A stretch of 37,766 nt of DNA, from contig NC_068986.1 in NCBI RefSeq assembly GCF_001194135.2, positions 11,790,271 through 11,828,036 of the forward strand. Reading direction: 5' to 3'. Position 1 is the first letter of the stretch; each line of letters starts with the position of its first letter. Both the position numbers and the translations under genes were made by a program. Source of the DNA: Octopus bimaculoides. Its lineage: Eukaryota. Under the pieces are notes generated by a model. That model was not told the DNA's origin. It did no database searches and worked only from the letters and a program-made list of their open reading frames with translations. Positions 3,091-37,339 of this stretch are shown in pieces.

Positions 3091-3460
3091 GGCACAGGCA
3101 TAGCTGTGTGGTAAGAAGCTTGCTTCCTAACAATGTGGTTCTGGGTTCGGTCCCACTATGTGGTACCTTGGAAAAGTGCCATCTACAGCTTTGGGCCAAC
3201 CAAAACCTTGTGAATAGATTTGGGATATGGAAACTGAAAGAAGTTCATTGTGTGTCTTTGTATGTTTGTGGTCCCCCCCACTATTTGACAACTAGTGTTG
3301 GTATGTTTACTTCCCTGTAACTTACTGGTTCGGTAAAAGAGTTCGATAGAATAAGTACCAGATTTAAAAAATAAAAAAGTACTGGGGTTGATTCAGTCAA
3401 CTAAGAAATTCAAGGCAGTGCTCCAGCATGACCACAATCTAATGACAAACAAGTAAAAGA
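3091..3460 (+). mobile_element. Near full-length OR2-like tRNA-derived SINE
   Basis: A-box-like tagctgtgtgg and B-box-like gggttcggtccc; the tail ctccagcatgaccacaatctaatgac recurs at 25535, 32883, 33590 and (reverse) 23950. Confidence 0.85.
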
Positions 3461-3970
3461 AAAAAATTTGAAATGAATTAAAGACTTGTAAAGTTCATCT
3501 TTACTAATCTCACAATGTGTCGGGTTTGAATATAATTTTTTTTTTAACACTTAAATTTTAAATTGTTTTAGTTTGCAAATTTAGGTTTTTCTCTGCAATG
3601 TGTCATAGTTTTCTAAATGTGTAAAGCACATGTTTATATTGTGTCTGAAAATAATTAAAACCATTAAATAGTGATTTGTAAATGGTCTGTAGCTATGAAG
3701 GAAGATATTTGAATTGTTAAGTTATCCATGCTCCAGGAAAGGCTTATTTGAATAAACTAAATGTTACCAAAACATTTACTACTTAAAACACTAACAAATA
3801 TTTTCAGTTTATTTGGTTGCCTCTTGAAGAAATTAAAACTCCTTCAAGTATCTTGTAGCGTGGTTGCCTTGTAGATTTTTTTTTGCTGAATTTTCAGCTT
3901 TTGCTCAAGTTTTTTTTTTTTGTATTTCTCTTTATATTACAATCATTTTTTTTAGTGTTCTTTATTTTAA

Positions 3971-9222: not shown

Positions 9223-10029
9223 GTTAATTCACTTAAGGTTATCTCTACAAAGATAATCAGTACTGGTTATAATTTCTAAGGAAGATCTGTAGTGATAACC
9301 TTAACCAGTGATGTAGTAGCACCGCTAACACAGAAGAATATAAAAATGAACTTTGTACTATATTAGGGTTGCATAATGAAATCCAGTGTCCCTACATGTC
9401 CTTAGTAAAGGATTAATGTTGGGCTTGTCAGATGCTACGTAGAAATCAATCACTATCGCAAATTCTAGTTTGGTACCTCACATTTCTGAGTTGTGAGTCC
9501 TGGTTCTGTTTCCATCTTGTTAGGGGTTTGCTTCTGTTATTCAGCTGTCAGTTCTTTCTACTCATTTTGTAGGTATTTTTATGGTTTAAGACTCATGTTA
9601 ATTAACCCTACCTATTAAAACAATGGTCCACCAAATGTTGTCACCAGAAGTTTTATGTCAGTGCTACAAGGAATGGGTTTTGAGTTGATGGTTCTACAAA
9701 GGGTGGTGGGGGGAGGGTGCGATTGGTATCAGTGCTACCAGGACAACGTCAATTATGAAATTGGATTGATCCAATAAGTATTGATTCTACACTGAAATCA
9801 AATTCCTGATAAATTGGAATGAGTTGCATTGAAAGAGTGAAGTATGAAGAAGTTTTGAGAGACTAACATGGCTGTTTTAATGTTGACCAACATGGCTATT
9901 TGACTATTTCCCCACCCCCATAAGTAAATATCTTAACTCTCCTTGTCTCAGATTTTAAAATAAAATGTAATTTTCCAAAGAATTGGAATTATTTTGCAGT
10001 TGAATGGTTAGTCCACGTTACTCTGTAAA

Positions 10030-10255
10030 GAGCATAGGGCTGGGTCTCCAGTTTCTCTGGCATAAATATTCTTCCCTGGATGAGGCACTGGTCTGTTATA
10101 CAATTACTAATTTTTGTCACCTGAGGGGGACTGGAGTGACATGAAATGAAGTGTTTTGCTCAAGAACACAACGCATTACCTGGTCCAGGAACTGAAACCA
10201 CAATCTTACCATCATGAGTCCAACACACTAACCATTAAACCACCATGCACCTCCA
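10030..10255 (-). mobile_element. tRNA SINE (third family)
   Basis: gactggagtgacatgaaatgaagtgttttgctcaagaacacaacgc...gaaaccacaatcttacc...catgcacctcc is reverse-complementary to 17955-18095. Confidence 0.75.
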
Positions 10256-11885
10256 GTTTGAATTCTCAGGAATTCAGTGTTTTAATGGAAGTTGTACGAA
10301 ACATGTTCATTATTTAGAATGGTTACCTCGACTTTTAATTCTGTAACATTAGATCTGGTCATAAGTGGGCTTCAGGTTTCTGAACCCTTCCTGTCTTGGT
10401 TTTAACTAGTATTAAAAAGAAAAAATGGCATTTAAGTGCTGGGAACAGCTTAATGGGTAAGCTAGGAAAATTCTCTCTATAAATTAAATTCATTGGGGCA
10501 AATGAAGAAACTGTCAAGAGAGCTGAACACCAGAAGGTCTTCAGAGAAGAAACCCTCCCCAAGCAAGTTTCAGCTCTTCTTACACTGTTAGAGGGCACAG
10601 GGTGCCTTTCTGCTGACACGTTTTAGCCACTTGGATATTAGAAACTTGTGCATTGGGAAATTTCATGCCGTTAGAACTCCTCTGTCGACTCAGCTTTCAA
10701 ACGTGTACTTAAATGATTGAATTAAATGACTGAATTAAATGATATGATTAAAGGGCAATGTTCAAGCAGGAGGTTGATTTTCTTGTGTGTGTGTGGAGAT
10801 AAGTCATAAAAATTTCTGAAATATTACTCTAGATATTGTTTGAAGTCTTGAGATCAAATAACTGTCTTGCTGCTGTAAATAGTGTCAAACTTCCACTTAG
10901 TTTAATAAAAGCACACAAAAAATCTGGGTCACGTTTCTATTCACTTGTTTAAGGATTGACAATGTGATATGAACTATAAAAACTTGCTGTAATATATATG
11001 CAAAGATCTAAATTTGGACTAGTGTGATGGGTGAGGATCAGCAGGTAGGTTAGTTAGTTGGGTAGATGAAAAACTTGATCAGTGACTGGTTTTTTTCTCT
11101 CCATGGATACTTGAATTTGTAAGGTGTATGCAGGTGGAATCTTGATATTTCTGTCTTAATGATATTTATTTCTTTTTACACTCGGAAGGAAGAGAGCCTA
11201 TTGAGGCTTTTCTAAAATGACTGTCATCTATCACAGTGGAAAGGTACTAAAATGGGTCCCTGATTGAAGCCATTACCCCCAACTTCAAATTAAAATGACA
11301 TTGGAGTTGTTATTGCTGACTAGAAACAATTGATTCTACTTACACAGCAACTAAATTTATTGATAATTCAATTAGAAGAAACTTTTAGTATTTTCCTGGC
11401 TATGTTTAAACTTGTTTACCAACTACAGACAGTGAGGTTATTGTATTACACCTTCACAGCCTATCTCTTTCTCTTCCTCTCTTTTTCCTTTTGTCTTGCT
11501 CTCCTATTTCTTTTCTTTTCACTCCCCTCTCTCTTTCTCTCTCTCTCTCTCCTCCTCTAAATTACTATTGGATACCAATTTCTGAGTTGATAAACAAAAG
11601 GAAACTATTTTTATGTCCATGTTCACCTGATCTCTGTGTGAGCGTACGTGTGTGTGCATGTGTGTGTTAGAATGGAAGGTCATTTTAAGAGTAGGAATCG
11701 GTGATGTATCACTCAAATGACTTCTATAAATGTCTGCTTAATATGTGGTTTCTTATCATGCTGGGACTAGTCTTACCAAAGGGCTTTGTTGTCCAAAATG
11801 AAAATATGCATTATTAGCTAAAATTCATAAAACTTCAGTTGTTTTCACAAAATAGCTTGGATTATTTCAGTTTTAATCAGCCCAT

Positions 11886-13223: not shown

Positions 13224-13624
13224 ACTGGTAATGGCTGTATGGTTAAGAGGTTTGTTTCCCAAACACACAATTCTGGTTTCAGTCCCACTGTGTGGCATCT
13301 TGAGTAAGTGTCTTCTATAATCCTGGGCCAACCAAAGCCTTCCGAATGGATTTGGTTGATGGAAACTGAAAGAAACCGGTCGTATTTGTGTTGGTGTGTC
13401 TCTTTGTTTTTACATCAGGTGATAGTTGTGAGAGTCACTGCCATACAAGCAATGTCAGTCCTTTCCGATATTCTGCAAAAACCTATCTAATCACGGGAAA
13501 ATATTTCCCTGCTTGGTAACAAGTGCTGGCAACAGGAAGAACAACATTTGGCTGTAGAAAATCTGTCTTAGACTCCTCTGTTTGACACATGCAAGTATAG
13601 ATATGTGAACATTAAAATGATGAC
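13224..13624 (+). mobile_element. OR-type tRNA SINE
   Basis: Head tggctgtatggttaagagg...ggtttcagtccc; tail ggcaacaggaag...gtagaaaatctg...cattaaaatgatgac. Confidence 0.8.
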
Positions 13625-18892: not shown

Positions 18893-19182
18893 AGTATTAT
18901 AGTATTACTCCAAACAGCACAAGTATTATAGTATTACTCCAAACAGCACAAGTATTATAGTATTACTCCAAACAGCACAAGTATTATAGTATTACTCCAA
19001 ACAGCACAAGTATTATAGTATTACTCCAAACAGCACAAGTATTATAGTATTACTCCAAACAGCACAAGTATTATAGTATTACTCCAAACAGCACAAGTAT
19101 TATAGTATTACTCCAAACAGCACAAGTATTATAGTATTACTCCAAACAACACAAGTATTATAGTATTACTCCAAACAGCACA
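18893..19182. repeat. 29-bp minisatellite, 10 copies
   Basis: Unit AGTATTATAGTATTACTCCAAACAGCACA; the only variant seen is G>A at 19149. Confidence 0.98.
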
Positions 19183-19290
19183 AATATCTCCTCCTTCCAC
19201 CATTGCTTAATGGAATAAATATTACTCTCTTCACTGTGCAAATAGATGTTGTTCACCTTGTCACTGCCCATAGTTAATTATCTAATAAGT

Positions 19291-21244: not shown

Positions 21245-21615
21245 ATGCGTGCAGACGTGGCTAAGTTTGTTTCCCAGCCATATGGCTTTGGATTCAGGCC
21301 CACTATGTGGCATGCTTAACAAGTGTCTCCAACTGTACTCTAGACTAACCAATATCTTGTGATTGGATTTGCTAGACAGAAACTGAAAGAACATCATGTG
21401 TGGGTTTGTGTCTTCTTGACTTGACATCACATGAGTTGTACTTGAGTGTCATTGTCATGCAAGCAATGTCATTCATTGTTAGTATTCTACAGCAACTTTG
21501 CTTGGAAACAAATGTGGGTTGATGATAGGAAAGGCATTCAGCCACAGAAAATCTGCCTCGACAAGTTTCATTTGGTTTGTGCAAAGCATGGAAACATAGT
21601 TGTTAAAAAAGTGAT
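21245..21615 (+). mobile_element. OR-type tRNA SINE
   Basis: aagtttgtttcccagccatatgg...gacagaaactgaaagaa...gataggaaaggcattcagccacagaaaatctgcctc. Confidence 0.75.
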
Positions 21616-23949: not shown

Positions 23950-24270
23950 TTTTGCTTGTTTCTGTTATTGGATTGTGGCCATGCTGGGGCACCACCTTGA
24001 AGGGTTTAGTCAAGCAACTTGGCCCCAGGACTTATTTTTAAGTCTTATACTTTTTCTGTCAGTCTCTTTTGGCAAGCTAAGTCATGAGGATGTAAAAAAA
24101 AACCCAAACCCAGTTGTCAAGTGACACACATTCTCACATACTCTCTAAATCCATTTGTAAGGCAAATGGTTGGCCCAAAGCTATAGATGCTTTCTCAAGG
24201 TACTACACAATGGGACTGAACATGAAGCGACATGCCTGCAAAGCAAGCTTCTTAATCACACCGCCATCCC
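23950..24270 (-). mobile_element. OR2-like tRNA SINE
   Basis: ggccatgctggggcaccacc...tgggactgaac...agcaagcttcttaatcacac is the reverse complement of the family. Confidence 0.75.
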
Positions 24271-24402
24271 AATACCCCTTCCCTCCTTCTAGTGTGGTTT
24301 TTCCAAATGTTCACCACTTGACCATAAAGTCGGAAGTGCATCTATTTCTGTTTAGACACTCAAAAACAGTTTGAGTAATATGACTTGGTTTAACCCTTTT
24401 GA

Positions 24403-24817
24403 GAGATGAGGAATTATGTGCATCATTTACATTATTTACATTTGATGGATATTTGTCCTCGTCTTGTTTGTTGTTAACACAATGTTTTGGCTGATATACC
24501 CTCCAGCCTTCATTAAGTGTCTTGGGGAAATTTCGAACCTGGGCTCTCATTCCTAAGGTATTTTTTTTTATATTATTATTCAGATCACTGCTTGGAATCG
24601 AATTCAGAATCTTGGGGTTAGTAGCCTAAGCTTTTAACCACTATGCCATATGCTCACAGGCATATGGCAGTGACCTGAATAATAATAATATCGAAAAATA
24701 CCTTAGGAATGAGTTCCCAGGTTCGAAATTTCCCCAAAACACCTGATGAAGGCTGGAGAATATATCAGCCGAAACGTGTTAACAAGTTGAGGACAAATAT
24801 CTGTCAAATGTAAATAA
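24403..24817. mobile_element. Foldback element copy 1: tRNA-like head plus hammerhead-like PLE-type body, arranged head-to-head
   Basis: Arms 24431-24653 and 24660-24817 are inverted; centre gccatatgc-tcacag-gcatatggc; minus-strand A box TGGCATAGTGG (24648-24638) and B box GAATTCGATTCC (24605-24594). Confidence 0.85.
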
Positions 24818-25534
24818 AGTTGATTGACTTGAGCACACCTTAATATATTACAAATACTAATTTTTCTTGGAAAGAAGTAATTTCAAAATTGCTTTTTTTT
24901 TTTCTTTTCAGTTCATAACATTCAAATAATTTCTGCCAATTTAGCATTGACCAACTTATAAACACTTTGTTTTTAGAATTATTGAAAGTTATCGTTTTTC
25001 TTCATCATTTGAGAAGCCTTAAGTTTAGTTTGAAAATATGCTATGCTCCTGCATCATCACTATCATTTTTACATCCACTTTTCCAGGCTTGCATGCTTCA
25101 GAGGGAGTTTGAGGTAGATTTTTCTACTGCCAAACATCCTAACTGTCACCAACCCGCTTATTTTGCAATAACTTTAATTCTGATGTGATGGCAATTTTCT
25201 TCCCTTAAATTTCAATTCTTGTATTTATATTGACAAAATTAGCAATTAGGTACTGCAGATGTGCTCTTTGTCAGAAACTGCTCTCAAAGTATTGCTTGTA
25301 AGTACCACACTCAAATATATTTTTAGTAGGTATTGTGTTCAGATGTACTTTATATTGGCTACTAAGGTACTAGACCTAAGAGTTTTTTCTAAGTTCAAAT
25401 TTTAAATATAAACTCAAAACATTCTTAGGAAGATCTTAAGGTTTACTTTAAATTCTTCACCTCATCTAAGGAAATAACAATACCTTTTTTATCAAACTGA
25501 ATTAGTTTCCTTAATGTCAGTCAATATAGACATG

Positions 25535-25867: not shown

Positions 25868-25980
25868 AGACAAAACAAAATGCTGAGACAGGTGAGACCA
25901 CCAGCCAAGGAATTGCCTCTGGTGCCACCTTGATAACCAATGGACTGAGTGAGGACCTTCCTGCACCTCCCCCAGAACTT
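25868..25980 (+). CDS. Internal coding exon (113 nt, phase 1 to phase 0) of an unidentified gene: xAG-TKQNAETGETTSQGIASGATLITNGLSEDLPAPPPEL
   Basis: Pyrimidine-rich acceptor tttctttgttttcag ending 25867; donor GTAAGT at 25981; open frame joins in phase with the 28642 exon; more GC-rich than its flanks. Confidence 0.8.
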
Positions 25981-26067
25981 GTAAGTAAAAAAAGAAATTT
26001 ATATTTAATTTGTGTTGGTTTTAGCTTAAATTATTGACTTAAGATGGTGGTTTCGATAGAAACCTGT

Positions 26068-27690: not shown

Positions 27691-27939
27691 CCCTTTAAAG
27701 TAAATAAATATGCATTTCATTTTGGGTTGTGAGTGACATCATTAGGAGGATGCGTGTGTTTTTGCTCTTTTCCACTTTTACTGCTATGGAAACTCACCCA
27801 GTCTCACACATTCTGGTAAGTATAGAATTATGGTTATGAAAACAGCAAACTATTCTGGGAGTGCAATGCTTGGTCAGATGAAAATTAAATATTTCATTCT
27901 AGCTTGACTGAGCATTAAGTATGTTTATACTCTTTGATC

Positions 27940-28335
27940 CTACAGTTCTGTATTTAAGAGATAAGGAATTATGTACATTATTTACATTTGGCAGATATTT
28001 GTCCTCATCTTGTTTGTTGTTAAAACAACATTTCGGCTGATATACCCTCCATCCTTCATCAAGTGTCTTGGGAAAATTTCAAACCTGGGTTCTCATTCCT
28101 AAGGTATTTTTTGATGTTATTATTATTCAGGTCATTGCCTGGAATTGAACTTGGAATCTTGGGGTTAGTAGCCTGTGCTGTTAACCTGAATGATGATAAT
28201 ATCGAAAAGTACCTTAAGAATGAGAACCCAGGTTCCAAATTTCCCCAAGACACCTGATGAAGGCTGGAGGGTATATCAGCTGAAACGTTAACAACAAACA
28301 AGATGAGGACAAATGTCTGTCAAATGTAAATAATG
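27940..28335 (-). mobile_element. Foldback element copy 2 with 12-bp TSD and one-sided tail
   Basis: Inverted ends gtacattatttacatttg (27973) and caaatgtaaataatgtac (28338); TSD tactctttgatc at 27928-27939 and 28336-28347; tail 27941-27972 on the left only. Confidence 0.9.
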
Positions 28336-28384
28336 TACTCTTTGATCTTGTTTTTCATGTTTTCTTGAAATTTTTTTTATTTAA

Positions 28385-28579
28385 CCCTTTTGACACCTAC
28401 CTGCCTAAGACCACCTTTGGCTCTATGATGTAAACCTCTTGTTTTAAAGTAAATTAAGACCTTTCACCAAAGTTTGTTCTGCATCCAAACAGCTTAATGA
28501 ATTATTTTGATTAATTCATTATTTTGAAAATGAGTTAAAACAAAGGCAGTGTTATTTCAACAGAAATATAGCAAAAGGG
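28385..28579. mobile_element. piggyBac-type MITE (family A), TTAA-flanked
   Basis: TTAA at 28381-28384 and 28580-28583; ends CCCTTTTG and CAAAAGGG. Confidence 0.85.
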
Positions 28580-28641
28580 TTAAACCTGTAAAATCAAAAT
28601 GTAAATTGATTAAAAAAAAAATTTTTTTTTTTTGTCTACAG

Positions 28642-29256
28642 GAAAATGGACATGAACCTACTGTGGAAAAGGTGACTGTATCAGAAGTTGAAAGTGAAGT
28701 TCTGAATGATATTGAAAATGATGCAATATATGATATTCCTGATCCAATTCCTGTAATAACTGATTCAGGATCTATCAAAAGTGGATCAGAAAAATCTGAT
28801 TTGGACAAACAAGAAACGAATTCAATTAAAACAGGATCGATTAAATCAGAGAAAGCAGAATCGGAAAAAGCGGAATCGGAGAAAGCAGTATCAGAAAAGT
28901 GTGAATCGGAGAAAGCGGAATCAGAAAAAGCTGAATCGGAGAAAGCTGAATCCGATATAGTGGCAGTGGTCAAATCTGATATTGAGTCGATTAAAGCAGA
29001 AGCTAATATATCAGACAACGAAGTTGCTGGACCAGCAACATCCTACTTCACAAAAGTCCCTCTTGAAGACTTAGACACTCCTCCTTCATTAGTGAAAGCC
29101 GTTAAAGACCCTAAAGAAATTGATGTTAGTGATCCATTAAACTTTGTTAATGTAAGTGCTGAGGAGATGAAGCAAAAGATCTTGTCCAAGAAGAAAATCA
29201 GGAAGTTCAAAGATATGAATCTAAAAGAAAAGCATGATATCTTAGACAGACTGTGA
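28642..29256 (+). CDS. Probable last coding exon: 204 aa, acidic and low-complexity, with (SEKAE)x7 and a basic helical C-terminus
   Basis: Acceptor (t)n-gtctacag ending 28641, in phase with the upstream exon; open to TGA at 29254-29256; repeat variation is mostly synonymous. The ORF-track start at 28549 lies in intron and MITE sequence. Confidence 0.85.
   Translation, partial: ENGHEPTVEKVTVSEVESEVLNDIENDAIYDIPDPIPVITDSGSIKSGSEKSDLDKQETNSIKTGSIKSEKAESEKAESEKAVSEKCESEKAESEKAESEKAESDIVAVVKSDIESIKAEANISDNEVAGPATSYFTKVPLEDLDTPPSLVKAVKDPKEIDVSDPLNFVNVSAEEMKQKILSKKKIRKFKDMNLKEKHDILDRL
28846..28950 (+). repeat. Coding 15-bp tandem repeat x7 (SEKAE)
   Basis: tcagagaaagcagaa/tcggaaaaagcggaa/tcggagaaagcagta/tcagaaaagtgtgaa/tcggagaaagcggaa/tcagaaaaagctgaa/tcggagaaagctgaa. 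Confidence 0.95.
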
Positions 29257-32882: not shown

Positions 32883-33188
32883 GGTGCAGGTATGACTGGT
32901 AAGAAGCTTGTTTCCAAATCACATGGCTCTGAGTTCAGTCCCACTGTGTGGCACCTTGGTCAAGTGTCTTCTATAGCCTCGGGCCAACCAAATCCTTGTG
33001 AGTGGATTTGGTAAGTGGAAACTGAAAGCGTGTTCTGCCAACTGGTGTTGGTATGTTTACATCCCCTATAACTTGATGGTTTGATAAGACTTATAGAATA
33101 AGTAACAGGCTTTAAAAAAAATACTAGTTAAATCGTTTGATTAAAAATACCAGGCAGTGCCCCAGCATGGCCACAATCTAATGACCGG
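32883..33188 (+). mobile_element. OR2-like SINE inserted in a MITE remnant
   Basis: ggtgcaggtatgactggtaagaagcttg...gtgccccagcatggccacaatctaatgac; MITE-like sequence on both sides. Confidence 0.8.
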
Positions 33189-33320
33189 GTGTTTGAAGCG
33201 TAAATTTGCACGGAATTTTGATGGAAGGTTTCATTTCTTCATTACTAATTGTCTCAAAGTTGGTAATCAAGACAGAGGTACTTTGAGTGATATGCAGTGA
33301 TTATAGGAAGGAATATTTAG

Positions 33321-33498
33321 ATAATTCCTCACCTCTTAAATATAGAACTGTATTATGTACATTATTTACATTTTTGTTCATCTTGTTAGCACAACGTTTT
33401 GACTGATATACCCTCCAGCCTTCATCAGGTGTCTTAGAGAAATTTCGAACCTGGGTTCTCATTCCTAAGGTATTTTTCAATGTTATTATTATTATCAT
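33321..33498 (-). mobile_element. Foldback element copy 3 (single arm preceded by the tail in the opposite orientation)
   Basis: 33352-33498 is colinear with the left arms of copies 1 and 2; 33321-33352 is the reverse complement of 27941-27972 (29/32). Confidence 0.85.
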
Positions 33499-33589
33499 TC
33501 AGTTTTGAGTTCCAATCTTGCTGAAATCTGCTTGGTTTCAGAATTTGAAATAAATAAAATCCAGATGAATGGAAGTTTAAAAATTTCTA

Positions 33590-33945
33590 GGCATGGCTAT
33601 GTGGTAAGAAGCTTGCTGGCTAACTAGATGGTTCTGGATTCAGTTCTACCGAGTGGCTCTTTGTGCTCTAGAGTGGCCTCGGGCTGACCAAAGCCTTGTG
33701 AGTAGATTTGGTAGATGGAAACTGTAAGAAGCCCGTCGTGTGTATATATATATATATGTTCCTGAGTTTGTTCTTCACTGCTTGACATCTGGTGTGTTTG
33801 TCCCAGTAACTGAACGGTTCGATAAGAGGATAAATACCAGGCTTGAAAGAAGTATTGATGGTCGATTCATTCGACTAAAATTCTTGAGGACAGTACCCCA
33901 GCATGGCCGCAGTTTAATGACCGAAACGGGTAAAACGTAAAAGAT
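33590..33945 (+). mobile_element. OR2-like SINE retaining CpGs
   Basis: ggcatggctatgtggtaagaagcttgc...gaagcccgtcg...ccccagcatggccgcagtttaatgaccgaaac. Confidence 0.85.
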
Positions 33946-35731: not shown

Positions 35732-36039
35732 ATTTTGCTGTGTCTAGGGAGAGCCATTATGCCAATAGTACTAACATACGCACTGGTTCAATTCCACTCC
35801 TTTATTATTAGTCAGCTGGTTAAATATCCAACTAAATAATCGATTGGCTTGTTTAATTTGGTTAAGCAGTAGGTCATTTGTTTTGTTTTTGCTTGTAACA
35901 TTTTCAGTGACTTTTCTCTTAATCGATTAGACAGTTCAGTTAGATGTTTAAGCAATTGACTAATAATAAAGGAGTGGAATTGAACCAATGTGTGTGTTAA
36001 TTATATTGGCATAATGACTCTCCCTAGACACAACAAAAT
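35732..36039. mobile_element. Foldback/MITE-like element with about 115-bp inverted arms
   Basis: Arms 35732-35845 and 35921-36039, including a perfect 31-bp inverted match (35784-35814 with 35957-35987). Confidence 0.8.
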
Positions 36040-36127: not shown

Positions 36128-36424
36128 CGTCCACTCGTGACCGAGGAAGACTATTGCTGACCTTTAGGAACATTGTGCGCTCTAGGACTAATATTTTTCA
36201 TTTGCGGCTCCGCTGGTGGCTAACGAGCTCTTCTCTTGAGAAGCATTGCAAACCAAGCTTTCCCCATTCACTACGCTAGCAATGCACTTTCGAGCAGCAC
36301 GCTTAAGTTCTTCATGCAAAATACGTGCTCTGTCAAAGGTGTCGACCCCCTCCCTAACCTGCTTCCTCCATCTGGGGCGATGACAGGCATTGCTCTCCCA
36401 GTCAGTCTCCTGCATATCATACAC
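36122..36424 (-). mobile_element. RTE-clade LINE 3' end abutting (AT)n
   Basis: Reads WESNACHRPRWRKQVREGVDTFDRARILHEELKRAARK, then C..LVSHQRSRK* in a shifted frame; 3' end cgagtggacggccatc followed by (AT)n. Confidence 0.8.
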
Positions 36425-36957
36425 NNNNNNNNNNNNNNNNNNNNNNNNNNNNNNNNNNNNNNNNNNNNNNNNNNNNNNNNNNNNNNNNNNNNNNNNNNNN
36501 NNNNNNNNNNNNNNNNNNNNNNNNNNNNNNNNNNNNNNNNNNNNNNNNNNNNNNNNNNNNNNNNNNNNNNNNNNNNNNNNNNNNNNNNNNNNNNNNNNNN
36601 NNNNNNNNNNNNNNNNNNNNNNNNNNNNNNNNNNNNNNNNNNNNNNNNNNNNNNNNNNNNNNNNNNNNNNNNNNNNNNNNNNNNNNNNNNNNNNNNNNNN
36701 NNNNNNNNNNNNNNNNNNNNNNNNNNNNNNNNNNNNNNNNNNNNNNNNNNNNNNNNNNNNNNNNNNNNNNNNNNNNNNNNNNNNNNNNNNNNNNNNNNNN
36801 NNNNNNNNNNNNNNNNNNNNNNNNNNNNNNNNNNNNNNNNNNNNNNNNNNNNNNNNNNNNNNNNNNNNNNNNNNNNNNNNNNNNNNNNNNNNNNNNNNNN
36901 NNNNNNNNNNNNNNNNNNNNNNNNNNNNNNNNNNNNNNNNNNNNNNNNNNNNNNNNN
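36425..36957. other. Assembly gap (533 N)
   Basis: N run. Confidence 1.
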
Positions 36958-36992: not shown

Positions 36993-37158
36993 GTGTATGA
37001 TATGCAGGAGACTGACTGGGAGAGCAATGCCTGTCATCGCCCCAGATGGAGGAAGCAGGTTAGGGAGGGGGTCGACACCTTTGACAGAGCACGTATTTTG
37101 CATGAAGAACTTAAGCGTGCTGCTCGAAAGTGCATTGCTAGCGTAGTGAATGGGGAAA
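36993..37158 (+). mobile_element. Inverted identical copy of part of the RTE fragment
   Basis: Exact reverse complement of 36259-36424 (166 bp). Confidence 0.9.
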
Positions 37159-37339
37159 CCTTCTGCACCAATAAACCACTATTGTTCTTGAGAGTTGATT
37201 TTTAAAAATATTTCCTACAGATTGTTTGAAGCTTACTTTCTTCTTACTCCTCGTTCCTTGGACCTGACATATATTGATGTTATCATAGATATGTGGTGCG
37301 GCCCGTCTATATTTTTGTGTAATGTTGTTCTCTAAGAGT

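Follow-up and report, generated by a model that had tools for sequence, protein, structure and literature searches.

Short fold-back repeats in Octopus bimaculoides as probable remains of a non-coding retroelement family mobilised by Penelope-like enzymes

A stretch of 37,766 nucleotides of the Octopus bimaculoides genome (NCBI RefSeq assembly GCF_001194135.2, contig NC_068986.1, positions 11,790,271 to 11,828,036 of the forward strand; the whole stretch is called the window, with position 1 as its first letter) holds three copies of a short repeat, two of which are folded back on themselves. As judged from their sequences and those of their relatives, these are probably dead copies of a family of short, non-coding octopus retroelements that was mobilised by the reverse transcriptase and the GIY-YIG endonuclease of Penelope-like elements (PLEs). 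The unit is about 230 nt long, or about 260 nt with its tail, and consists of a tRNA-like block, an A-rich linker, a short body, a minimal hammerhead motif and an AC/A-rich stretch. Two alternative 3' ends, about 31 nt from each other, are in use, and what lies between them is the optional tail.

An earlier note on this DNA had placed copies at 24403-24817, 27940-28335 and 33321-33498. The three intervals form one repeat family, with blastn E values of 1e-33 to 1e-104 between copies, and blastn of the intervals against the window found no further copy in it. An nhmmer profile built from 13 arms likewise returned five arms only, at 24398-24640(-), 24666-24834(+), 27941-28186(-), 28179-28338(+) and 33324-33531(-). 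The described order of modules, with the tRNA-like head followed by (AAT)n, the body, a CUGAUGA...GAAAC motif and an A-rich 3' part, was seen in the arm alignment. Copies 1 and 2 are inverted pairs with their heads turned inward, as had been described, copy 3 is a single arm, and the proposed centre of copy 1, gccatatgc-tcacag-gcatatggc, was found at 24645-24668. The places of the copies stood, but not all of their limits: copy 1 was refined to 24388-24824 and copy 3 extends by the profile to about 33531, past 33498, whereas copy 2 remains at 27940-28335.

Copy 1 is flanked by a putative target site duplication (TSD), the 7-mer TGACTTG at 24381-24387 and again at 24825-24831; read as a 12-mer it matches at 8 of 12 positions, which makes it less secure than the TSD of copy 2. 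A PLE-type tail of 30 nt (24388-24417, minus strand) belongs to the left arm only, and its first 20 nt agree with the family tail ATAATTCCTyATCTCTyAAA. The left arm itself (24418-24653, minus strand) is a full-length unit, aligned to consensus positions 1-248 at 91%, with the 3' A-rich part, a mutated hammerhead (24476-24521), the body, (AAT)n and the tRNA-like head (24585-24653), in which the A box lies at 24638-24648 and the B box at 24594-24605. A filler of 6 nt, tcacag (24654-24659), separates the palindrome halves 24645-24653 and 24660-24668, which are the two unit 5' ends. Of the head, the right arm (24660-24824, plus strand) retains the first 9 nt; after a skip of about 53 nt, located at a GC microhomology, the arm continues with the body, the hammerhead (24738-24780) and a tail-less 3' end. 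A 14-mer, TTTAACCCTTTTGA, stands at 24389-24402, where the outer tail of copy 1 departs from the family consensus, and again at 28385-28398, 50 bp downstream of copy 2; it may be chance or part of another repeat.

Copy 2 lies between two perfect 12-bp copies of its TSD, TACTCTTTGATC, at 27928-27939 and 28336-28347. The tail of 33 nt (27940-27972, minus strand; ATAATTCCTTATCTCTTAAATACAGAACTGTAG in unit sense) is again confined to the left arm, while the right arm stops at ...aaataatg with the TSD directly after it. The left arm (27973-28186, minus strand) is 5'-truncated at consensus position 15, within the A box, and includes the hammerhead (28022-28067), a partial head (28132-28186) and a B box (28141-28152). 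The right arm (28187-28335, plus strand) is 5'-truncated at about consensus position 69, the start of (AAT)n, and has its hammerhead at 28249-28292. The single arm of copy 3 (33321-33531, minus strand) consists of a hammerhead (33388-33433) with a degenerate partial head, and its tail (33321-33351) is inverted relative to the unit, with a second, reverse-complemented tail-like stretch at 33289-33320. The inverted tail is possibly shared by a further octopus copy (L002).

Relatives were found by comparing translated arms with protein collections, in which other copies appear as spurious open reading frames (ORFs). Among 1.84 billion representative proteins there were 93 such relatives, 34-179 aa long, and since none exceeds 179 aa, no long PLE protein on record starts with the arm peptide. 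Octopus copies were obtained on five Logan contigs, giving an octopus sample of about 12 arms. L002 is a single arm. L005, L008 and L009 are fold-backs: the arms of L005 start at consensus positions 141 and 87 and both of its ends have a tail, the left arm of L008 consists of the tail and about 45 nt only next to a full-length right arm, and the arms of L009 start at positions 103 and 39. L010 is a single full unit within a (TG/TA)n microsatellite (600-655), a target that agrees with the microsatellite bias published for PLEs, and its linker differs from that of the window subfamily. An annotated O. bimaculoides protein of 94 aa, 'dystrobrevin beta isoform X1' (P0005), begins with a translated copy of the octopus family, MPMGIWHSGEGWRVYQPKCCVNNKQDEDKYPSK, in which the head start is joined to the hammerhead region; this may be an exonised or a mis-annotated repeat.

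According to published work, PLE insertions are strongly 5'-truncated and have an inverted, likewise 5'-truncated copy attached head-to-head, with palindromes where the two meet; a tail of 30-40 nt may be present, in many cases on a single end, and the TSD length varies (PMC8557442, PMC3846280). The tail is the stretch between two internal reverse-transcription start sites, and both target strands are cleaved and extended by the enzyme (PMC11167929). The window copies carry this insertion signature. Head-to-head inverted pairs are present in copies 1 and 2 and in L005, L008 and L009 of the octopus, and also in L007, L011 and L012, three loci of a second eukaryote (ENA assembly ERZ21867824; 33% GC, without octopus short interspersed nuclear elements, SINEs) that carry a related family, and the junction position is different in every one of them. 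The tail is one-sided in copies 1 and 2 and, with about 36 nt, in L007, L011 and L012; L005 is the only insertion with tails on both sides. TSDs measure 12 bp (copy 2), 7 bp (copy 1), 6 bp (L011) and 8 bp (L012), and none was established for L008 and copy 3. Mobilisation by PLE proteins, which the earlier note had preferred to a DNA transposon, is well supported, among other features by the inverted 5'-truncated pairs, the one-sided tails of 30-33 nt and the variable TSDs.

A transposase-mobilised element, either a foldback or a miniature inverted-repeat transposable element (MITE) with terminal inverted repeats, in which tRNA-like and hammerhead motifs had arisen by chance, would agree with the inverted arms of about 165-245 bp between direct repeats in copies 1 and 2, and Rfam scores the copies only as MITE-like microRNA (miRNA)-precursor hairpins. 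However, the ends are asymmetric, with the tail on one side only, the TSD length is not fixed (6-12 bp), single-arm copies exist (copy 3 and L010), the inner junctions differ in every fold-back, and the block is homologous to a region 3' of a PLE ORF. A DNA transposon is very improbable in the face of these features. At the left of copy 1, a 'piggyBac-like TTAA|CCCTTT' end was considered and rejected, as the right end has no counterpart.

Because each of the five octopus fold-backs has a different junction, the fold-back appears to have been made anew at every insertion and not to have been inherited. A whole fold-back that acted as the master copy and was propagated as one unit, for instance by a read-through transcript, with the loss of the right-arm head inherited, is improbable. 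Such a master could explain that a C3-to-U change is common to both window left arms and that both window right arms have ATATCG and are headless, and one central deletion would turn a structure like that of copy 1 into copy 2. Against it, the junctions of copies 1 and 2, L005, L008 and L009 are at different consensus positions, left and right arms do not cluster separately (identities of 0.91 between the two arms of copy 2, 0.89 between the left arms and 0.88 between the right arms of copies 1 and 2), and single units exist. The varying junctions also bear on the missing heads, which had been attributed to deletion from an unstable palindrome. This is probably wrong, since junctions that all differ are expected where two cDNAs meet at integration, and 5' truncation at integration is probably the better explanation than palindrome decay. 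The microhomology noticed at the skip of the copy 1 right arm was recovered, as GC, and this arm, with 9 nt of head kept, is an internal skip.

The fold-back shape would then be a consequence of how PLE enzymes pasted the copies in. By analogy with the published enzyme, a PLE protein would bind the hammerhead-to-tail region of the RNA and nick both strands of an AT-rich target (PMC11167929). Synthesis of cDNA would begin on each strand at one of the two internal sites, and the two cDNAs would run toward each other and be joined wherever they stop. Joining at the stop points would produce the fold-back, the variable 5' truncation that appears as 'lost' heads, and the variable TSD. A weaker suggestion is that the template would be a short RNA beginning at the tRNA-like 5' end, which RNA polymerase III (Pol III) could make from the A and B boxes.

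The hammerhead motif ties the family to PLEs in a second way. In PLE minimal hammerheads, one additional nucleotide stands between A9 and G10.1, G10.1 pairs with C11.1, helix II is long (6-8 bp) and helix I short (4-5 bp), and helix III is missing, with palindromic positions 15.2/16.2 (PMC4209133). The majority consensus over nine arms (from five octopus insertions, together with two arms of the related family) reads GACAC-CUGAUGA-A-GGCUGG-AGGGUAUA-UCAGCC-GAAA-CG-UU-GUGUU and has every one of these features. It also passes a descriptor taken from the same publication (bulged nucleotide after A9, G10.1-C11.1, 6-bp helix II, 5-bp helix I and palindromic 15.2/16.2), for which 0 to 0.005 matches per shuffled window were obtained as background. 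The extra A between A9 and G10.1 is invariant in the nine arms, and pair 14-33 is G-C in seven of them. Helix II of the consensus has 6 bp and helix I 5 bp, with 88.9% and 71.1% of the cells paired, respectively; over both helices, 80.8% of the cells are paired compared with 20-50% when the partners are slid. The consensus has GAAA-CG-UU in place of a helix III, where U-H is expected after the palindrome, with the variants CA and UG as typical CpG decay, and one compensatory pair, U-A to C-G, distinguishes the octopus family from the related family.

Individual arms deviate from this consensus in ways typical of decay, namely by CG turning into CA or TG and by short deletions immediately 3' of GAAACGU. 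The CUGANGA and GAAA cores are both intact in the window only in the right arms of copies 1 and 2, and the left arms and copy 3 have one to three core substitutions each: C3U, G5A and G12A, together with CG>CA, in the left arm of copy 1, C3U and C15.2U in that of copy 2, and G12A in copy 3. Helix I is whole in the window only in the left arm of copy 1. In the right arm of copy 1, a 3-nt deletion takes out H17 and helix I, and in that of copy 2, which has a G10.1-U11.1 pair, a 5-nt deletion takes out helix I. Judging by these changes, all five window arms are inactivated as hammerheads and the copies are old and dead; at the level of the family, the conserved features identify the motif as a decayed but genuine PLE-type minimal hammerhead, so that the Penelope type assigned to it in the earlier note applies to the consensus level only. 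Such a hammerhead is predicted to act only as a dimer. An exact-pattern scan of metagenomes for the hammerhead core gave a single match, a chance one in a prokaryotic gene.

Divergence from the consensus amounts to 0.04-0.10 for the window arms, probably an underestimate because the consensus was built largely from these arms, and to 0.18-0.36 for the other octopus copies. Published work puts the expansion of PLEs in octopus at a distance of about 0.2.

A connection to a PLE is provided by L007 of the second eukaryote. On its minus strand, an ORF (...LPYVKGLAERI...NCVYSIPCSCGKIYKGETGRPLKVRLEEH...) is followed by an untranslated region (UTR) of about 115 nt, a tRNA-like block (TGGCATAACGG ... 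GCTACTAA ... AGGTTCAATCC), a linker, the same hammerhead and the AC-rich stretch. The ORF can be identified by its motifs as a fragment of a PLE GIY-YIG endonuclease. The arm on the ORF side ends without a tail after the AC-rich stretch, and the inverted partner arm, which is 5'-truncated and starts about 50 nt inside the UTR, has one. Since the partner starts within the UTR, the template RNA must have contained ORF, UTR and block in one piece, and the block is therefore the PLE's own terminal region. Homology between the octopus unit and L007 covers part of the head, 25 nt before the hammerhead, the hammerhead, the AC-rich stretch and the tail. The comparison of body and tail with PLE termini that the earlier note had called for thus gave homology to the 3' terminal region of a GIY-YIG-encoding PLE, in the related family. 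No reverse transcriptase was seen next to the hammerhead-tail block in L007, and tblastn of the L007 endonuclease peptide gave no match in the window.

The other two loci of the second eukaryote, L011 and L012, are the fold-backs with TSDs of 6 and 8 bp mentioned above. In L012, one arm begins about 5 nt upstream of the tRNA-like block and the other arm is a tandem array with a 129-nt unit. This array (10030-10379) comprises 2.7 copies that are 98% alike, with intact minimal-hammerhead cores, and each unit is composed of the hammerhead 3' half, the AC-rich stretch, the tail and the hammerhead 5' half. It is placed head-to-head with a full unit (9716-10029), is flanked by the 8-bp TSD CTTAAAAA and resembles a small non-LTR retrozyme array. 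An RVT_1 ORF in L012 proved to be an unrelated LINE-type reverse transcriptase (LINE, long interspersed nuclear element). A chimeric ORF of the same organism (P0055) has an N-terminus that resembles a haloacid-dehalogenase-type (HDHD2-like) exon, followed by a copy of the related element.

The left arm of copy 1 has an A box, TGGCATAGTGG, with 11/11 positions and a B box, AATTCGATTCC, with 9/11 positions, 41-44 nt apart, a tRNA-like spacing. L007, L009 and L010 have homologous blocks in which the B box is better. The octopus head is homologous to the heads of the other copies and aligns with the head of the common octopus SINE. TTTT in sense orientation is absent from the consensus and from eight of 11 octopus arms, but no more than about one occurrence would be expected by chance in any case. 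A pile-up of 5' ends at the tRNA-like start, together with the boxes, speaks for a short template: both arms of copy 1, the right arm of L008, L010 and L012 have their 5' ends within -7 to +3 of this start, in what is a small sample.

The same 5' ends bear on an alternative in which no separate SINE ever existed and the copies are heavily 5'-truncated, solo or inverted pseudo-long terminal repeats (pLTRs) of an autonomous octopus PLE with a tRNA-like stretch in its pLTR. In that case the PLE's own Pol II promoter would transcribe the RNA, and the shared 5' end would be the promoter start site or the pLTR boundary. This alternative is less likely but has appreciable probability. In its favour, the block of L007 is contiguous with the endonuclease ORF and UTR of a PLE and one arm starts inside the UTR, PLEs regularly leave pLTRs that are solo or inverted and have their tail on one side, no tRNA model accepts the head, and a T5 run is present in L010. 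It conflicts with the observation that, among about 12 octopus arms, there is none that reaches upstream beyond the tRNA-like 5' end and that four stop within a few nucleotides of it, as such ends are not expected from random truncation of an RNA of 3-4 kb. L012 has the same stop in a second eukaryote, and no long ORF with the arm peptide was found among the 1.84 billion representative proteins.

Several results weigh against mobilisation of a short Pol III transcript by PLE enzymes, or against single parts of this interpretation. Under the strict descriptor, no window arm has an intact hammerhead and the consensus alone passes. No Rfam hammerhead family (Hammerhead_1, _3, _II, HH9, HH10) was found at E<=10 in the window or in the relatives, searches with 111 nt included; Rfam hammerhead models expect helix III, which the minimal form lacks. 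Covariation scores stayed within the range of column shuffles, a measure for which decayed copies are uninformative. The inverted double tail of copy 3 is not accounted for by the published tail model, and no TSD was found for L005. No autonomous PLE with this end was seen in octopus, no octopus PLE being among the sequences examined; the PLE ORF of L007 is an endonuclease-bearing fragment only, and it was recognised by neither Pfam nor PDB sequence search, so that its identity rests on motifs. As to the head, the box statistics are weak in the window alone, as the A box by itself is expected 0.32 times per shuffled window and the A-box half combined with the B box 0.10 times, and the lack of T4 runs in the consensus is not significant. 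The T5 run of L010 is in the linker and would stop Pol III. The tRNA-like block belongs to the PLE itself in L007, which counts against a short Pol III template.

Whether the head fits a tRNA model had been named beforehand as a check of the SINE proposal, and formally the outcome goes against it: ARAGORN found no tRNA in the window, L002, L005 and L007-L010 (0 genes), relaxed ARAGORN thresholds gave nothing above the shuffle background for the head, and the Rfam tRNA model was absent at E<=10 in the window and the relatives. As a control, bona fide octopus SINE heads mostly fail with ARAGORN too, and one of four was found at the 80% threshold. Since the terminal region of the L007 PLE has a homologous tRNA-like block, there is no need to see in the octopus head a SINE head of independent origin. 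As a Pol III SINE, the element is unproven.

A wider reading, to which we would give somewhat less than an even chance, supposes a PLE lineage in octopus and at least one other eukaryote with a tRNA-like Pol III promoter inside its own pLTR, which would double as a SINE master gene. Pol III transcripts from the pLTR would contain the hammerhead-to-tail region that is recognised by the PLE reverse transcriptase. If true, this would be the first class of SINEs with a PLE partner instead of a LINE, born inside the partner, and it may account for some of the many unclassified SINE families of octopus; about 12% of the DNA of cephalopod genomes has been reported as SINE, with most families unclassified. 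SINEs are defined by their partnership with LINEs, and a tie to PLEs would extend this rule to the third retrotransposon class and would reveal how a SINE can originate inside the terminal repeat of its partner. No paper was found in the literature on a tRNA-like block in a PLE terminal region or on a PLE-partnered SINE, and a 2024 paper that describes small-RNA-derived non-autonomous LTR elements as a new type does not mention PLEs.

Most features of the octopus element have counterparts in published systems. With PLE minimal hammerheads it has in common the extra nucleotide between A9 and G10.1, the G10.1-C11.1 pair, a 6-bp helix II, a 4-5-bp helix I, the lack of helix III and the palindromic 15.2/16.2 (PMC4209133). 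The published motifs are mostly dispersed and single, and they also occur as opposite-strand pairs 100-700 bp apart (PMC4209133). In contrast to them, every copy here is mutated and the motif is located about 130 nt downstream of a tRNA-like block. The insertions resemble those of PLEs in their head-to-head inverted copies, small palindromes or filler at the junction, mostly one-sided tails, variable TSDs and AT-rich or microsatellite targets (PMC3846280, PMC8557442, PMC11167929), and the alternative 3' ends about 31-36 nt apart match the two reverse-transcription start sites (PMC11167929). They differ in that the octopus copies are free of ORFs, measure up to about 260 nt per arm and have their full-length 5' end at the tRNA-like start.

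Tandem arrays that lead to circular RNAs are typical of retrozymes, and the window has no tandem copies, the 129-nt array being present only in the related family (L012). Schistosome SM-alpha has Pol III boxes. Like the octopus element, SM-alpha and Sj-alpha are short, non-coding, dispersed and SINE-like, with a type I hammerhead, according to the account of Ferbeyre 1998 given in PMC8490949. The SM-alpha hammerhead is canonical with loop-loop contacts and is recognised by Rfam, and SM-alpha is often found in tandem, whereas the octopus element has the PLE minimal form, a PLE tail and fold-back insertions; this contrast is drawn from descriptions and not from sequence. Animal non-LTR retrozymes are likewise non-autonomous and hammerhead-bearing, and descent from PLE pLTRs and use of PLE enzymes have been proposed for them (PMC7229834; bioRxiv 10.64898/2026.07.22.740005).

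tRNA-derived SINEs with a LINE 3' end offer another parallel, in that a small-RNA-like promoter block is combined with the recognition region of a partner's reverse transcriptase, the 5' end is defined at the tRNA-like start and an internal A-rich linker is present. Unlike in these SINEs, the partner here would be a PLE instead of a LINE, the partner's terminal region has the head as well, and no tRNA model fits. Short non-autonomous PLE derivatives, inverted pLTR pairs, opposite-strand paired minimal hammerheads, PLE-derived retrozymes and SM-alpha are already on record. The description as a candidate new system was therefore overstated, and the octopus element is a variant of a known sort of element, as judged from the published literature and not from Dfam/Repbase. 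It also offers a readable example of what two-strand PLE integration leaves behind, with tails outward, heads inward and variable junctions, and annotation of cephalopod genomes can easily mistake such fold-backs for MITEs or miRNA precursors.

If contained in a pre-mRNA, copy 1 is predicted to form a hairpin with a length of about 190 bp (-233 kcal/mol, z = -22.6). This stability, together with sub-threshold matches to miRNA precursor families, could be taken to mean that the hairpins are RNA genes selected by the host, for example miRNA precursors or double-stranded RNA (dsRNA) editing substrates, and not transposon debris. We regard this as highly unlikely. The miRNA matches arise because copy 1 would fold into a long hairpin; they remain far below the gathering scores (63 vs 119 bits) and owe their scores to the hairpin shape alone. 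Identity between the arms has fallen to 75-80% with no compensation, and the same family is dispersed with variable architecture. By folding prediction, the fold-backs are today simply long intronic hairpins, and intronic hairpins of about 190 bp may plausibly serve as dsRNA substrates in animals with heavy RNA editing.

The surroundings of the copies contain caldesmon-like exons on the plus strand, at 25870-25983 and 28636-29256. Their identity to Octopus sinensis 'caldesmon isoform X6' is 95% and 76%, respectively, and SEKAE-type acidic repeats are encoded by the last of them. Copy 1 is situated upstream of the two exons, copy 2 in the intron that separates them, and copy 3 on the downstream side of the stop codon. 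A search with the N-terminal part of the O. sinensis caldesmon gave only two Logan contigs of 1 kb (L003 and L004), which end short of copy 1. The common octopus tRNA-derived SINE, whose head reads GGCATGGCTGTGTGGTAAGAAGCTTGCTTCCCAACCACATGGTTCTGGGTTCAGTCCCAC, is abundant in the window, with diverged copies at 880-1123, 3096-3467, 13231-13475, 21263-21477, 24167-24270, 32897-33185 and 33589-33945, one of which is just upstream of copy 1 and one beside copy 3. Elsewhere in the window, a 170-bp inverted repeat with 99.4% identity (36255-36424 and 36993-37162) surrounds a gap of 533 N (36425-36957) and may be a young palindromic insertion or an assembly artefact. An imperfect palindrome of 308 bp is located at 35732-36039, and a tandem repeat with a period of 58 bp and about 99% identity between units at 18893-19187.

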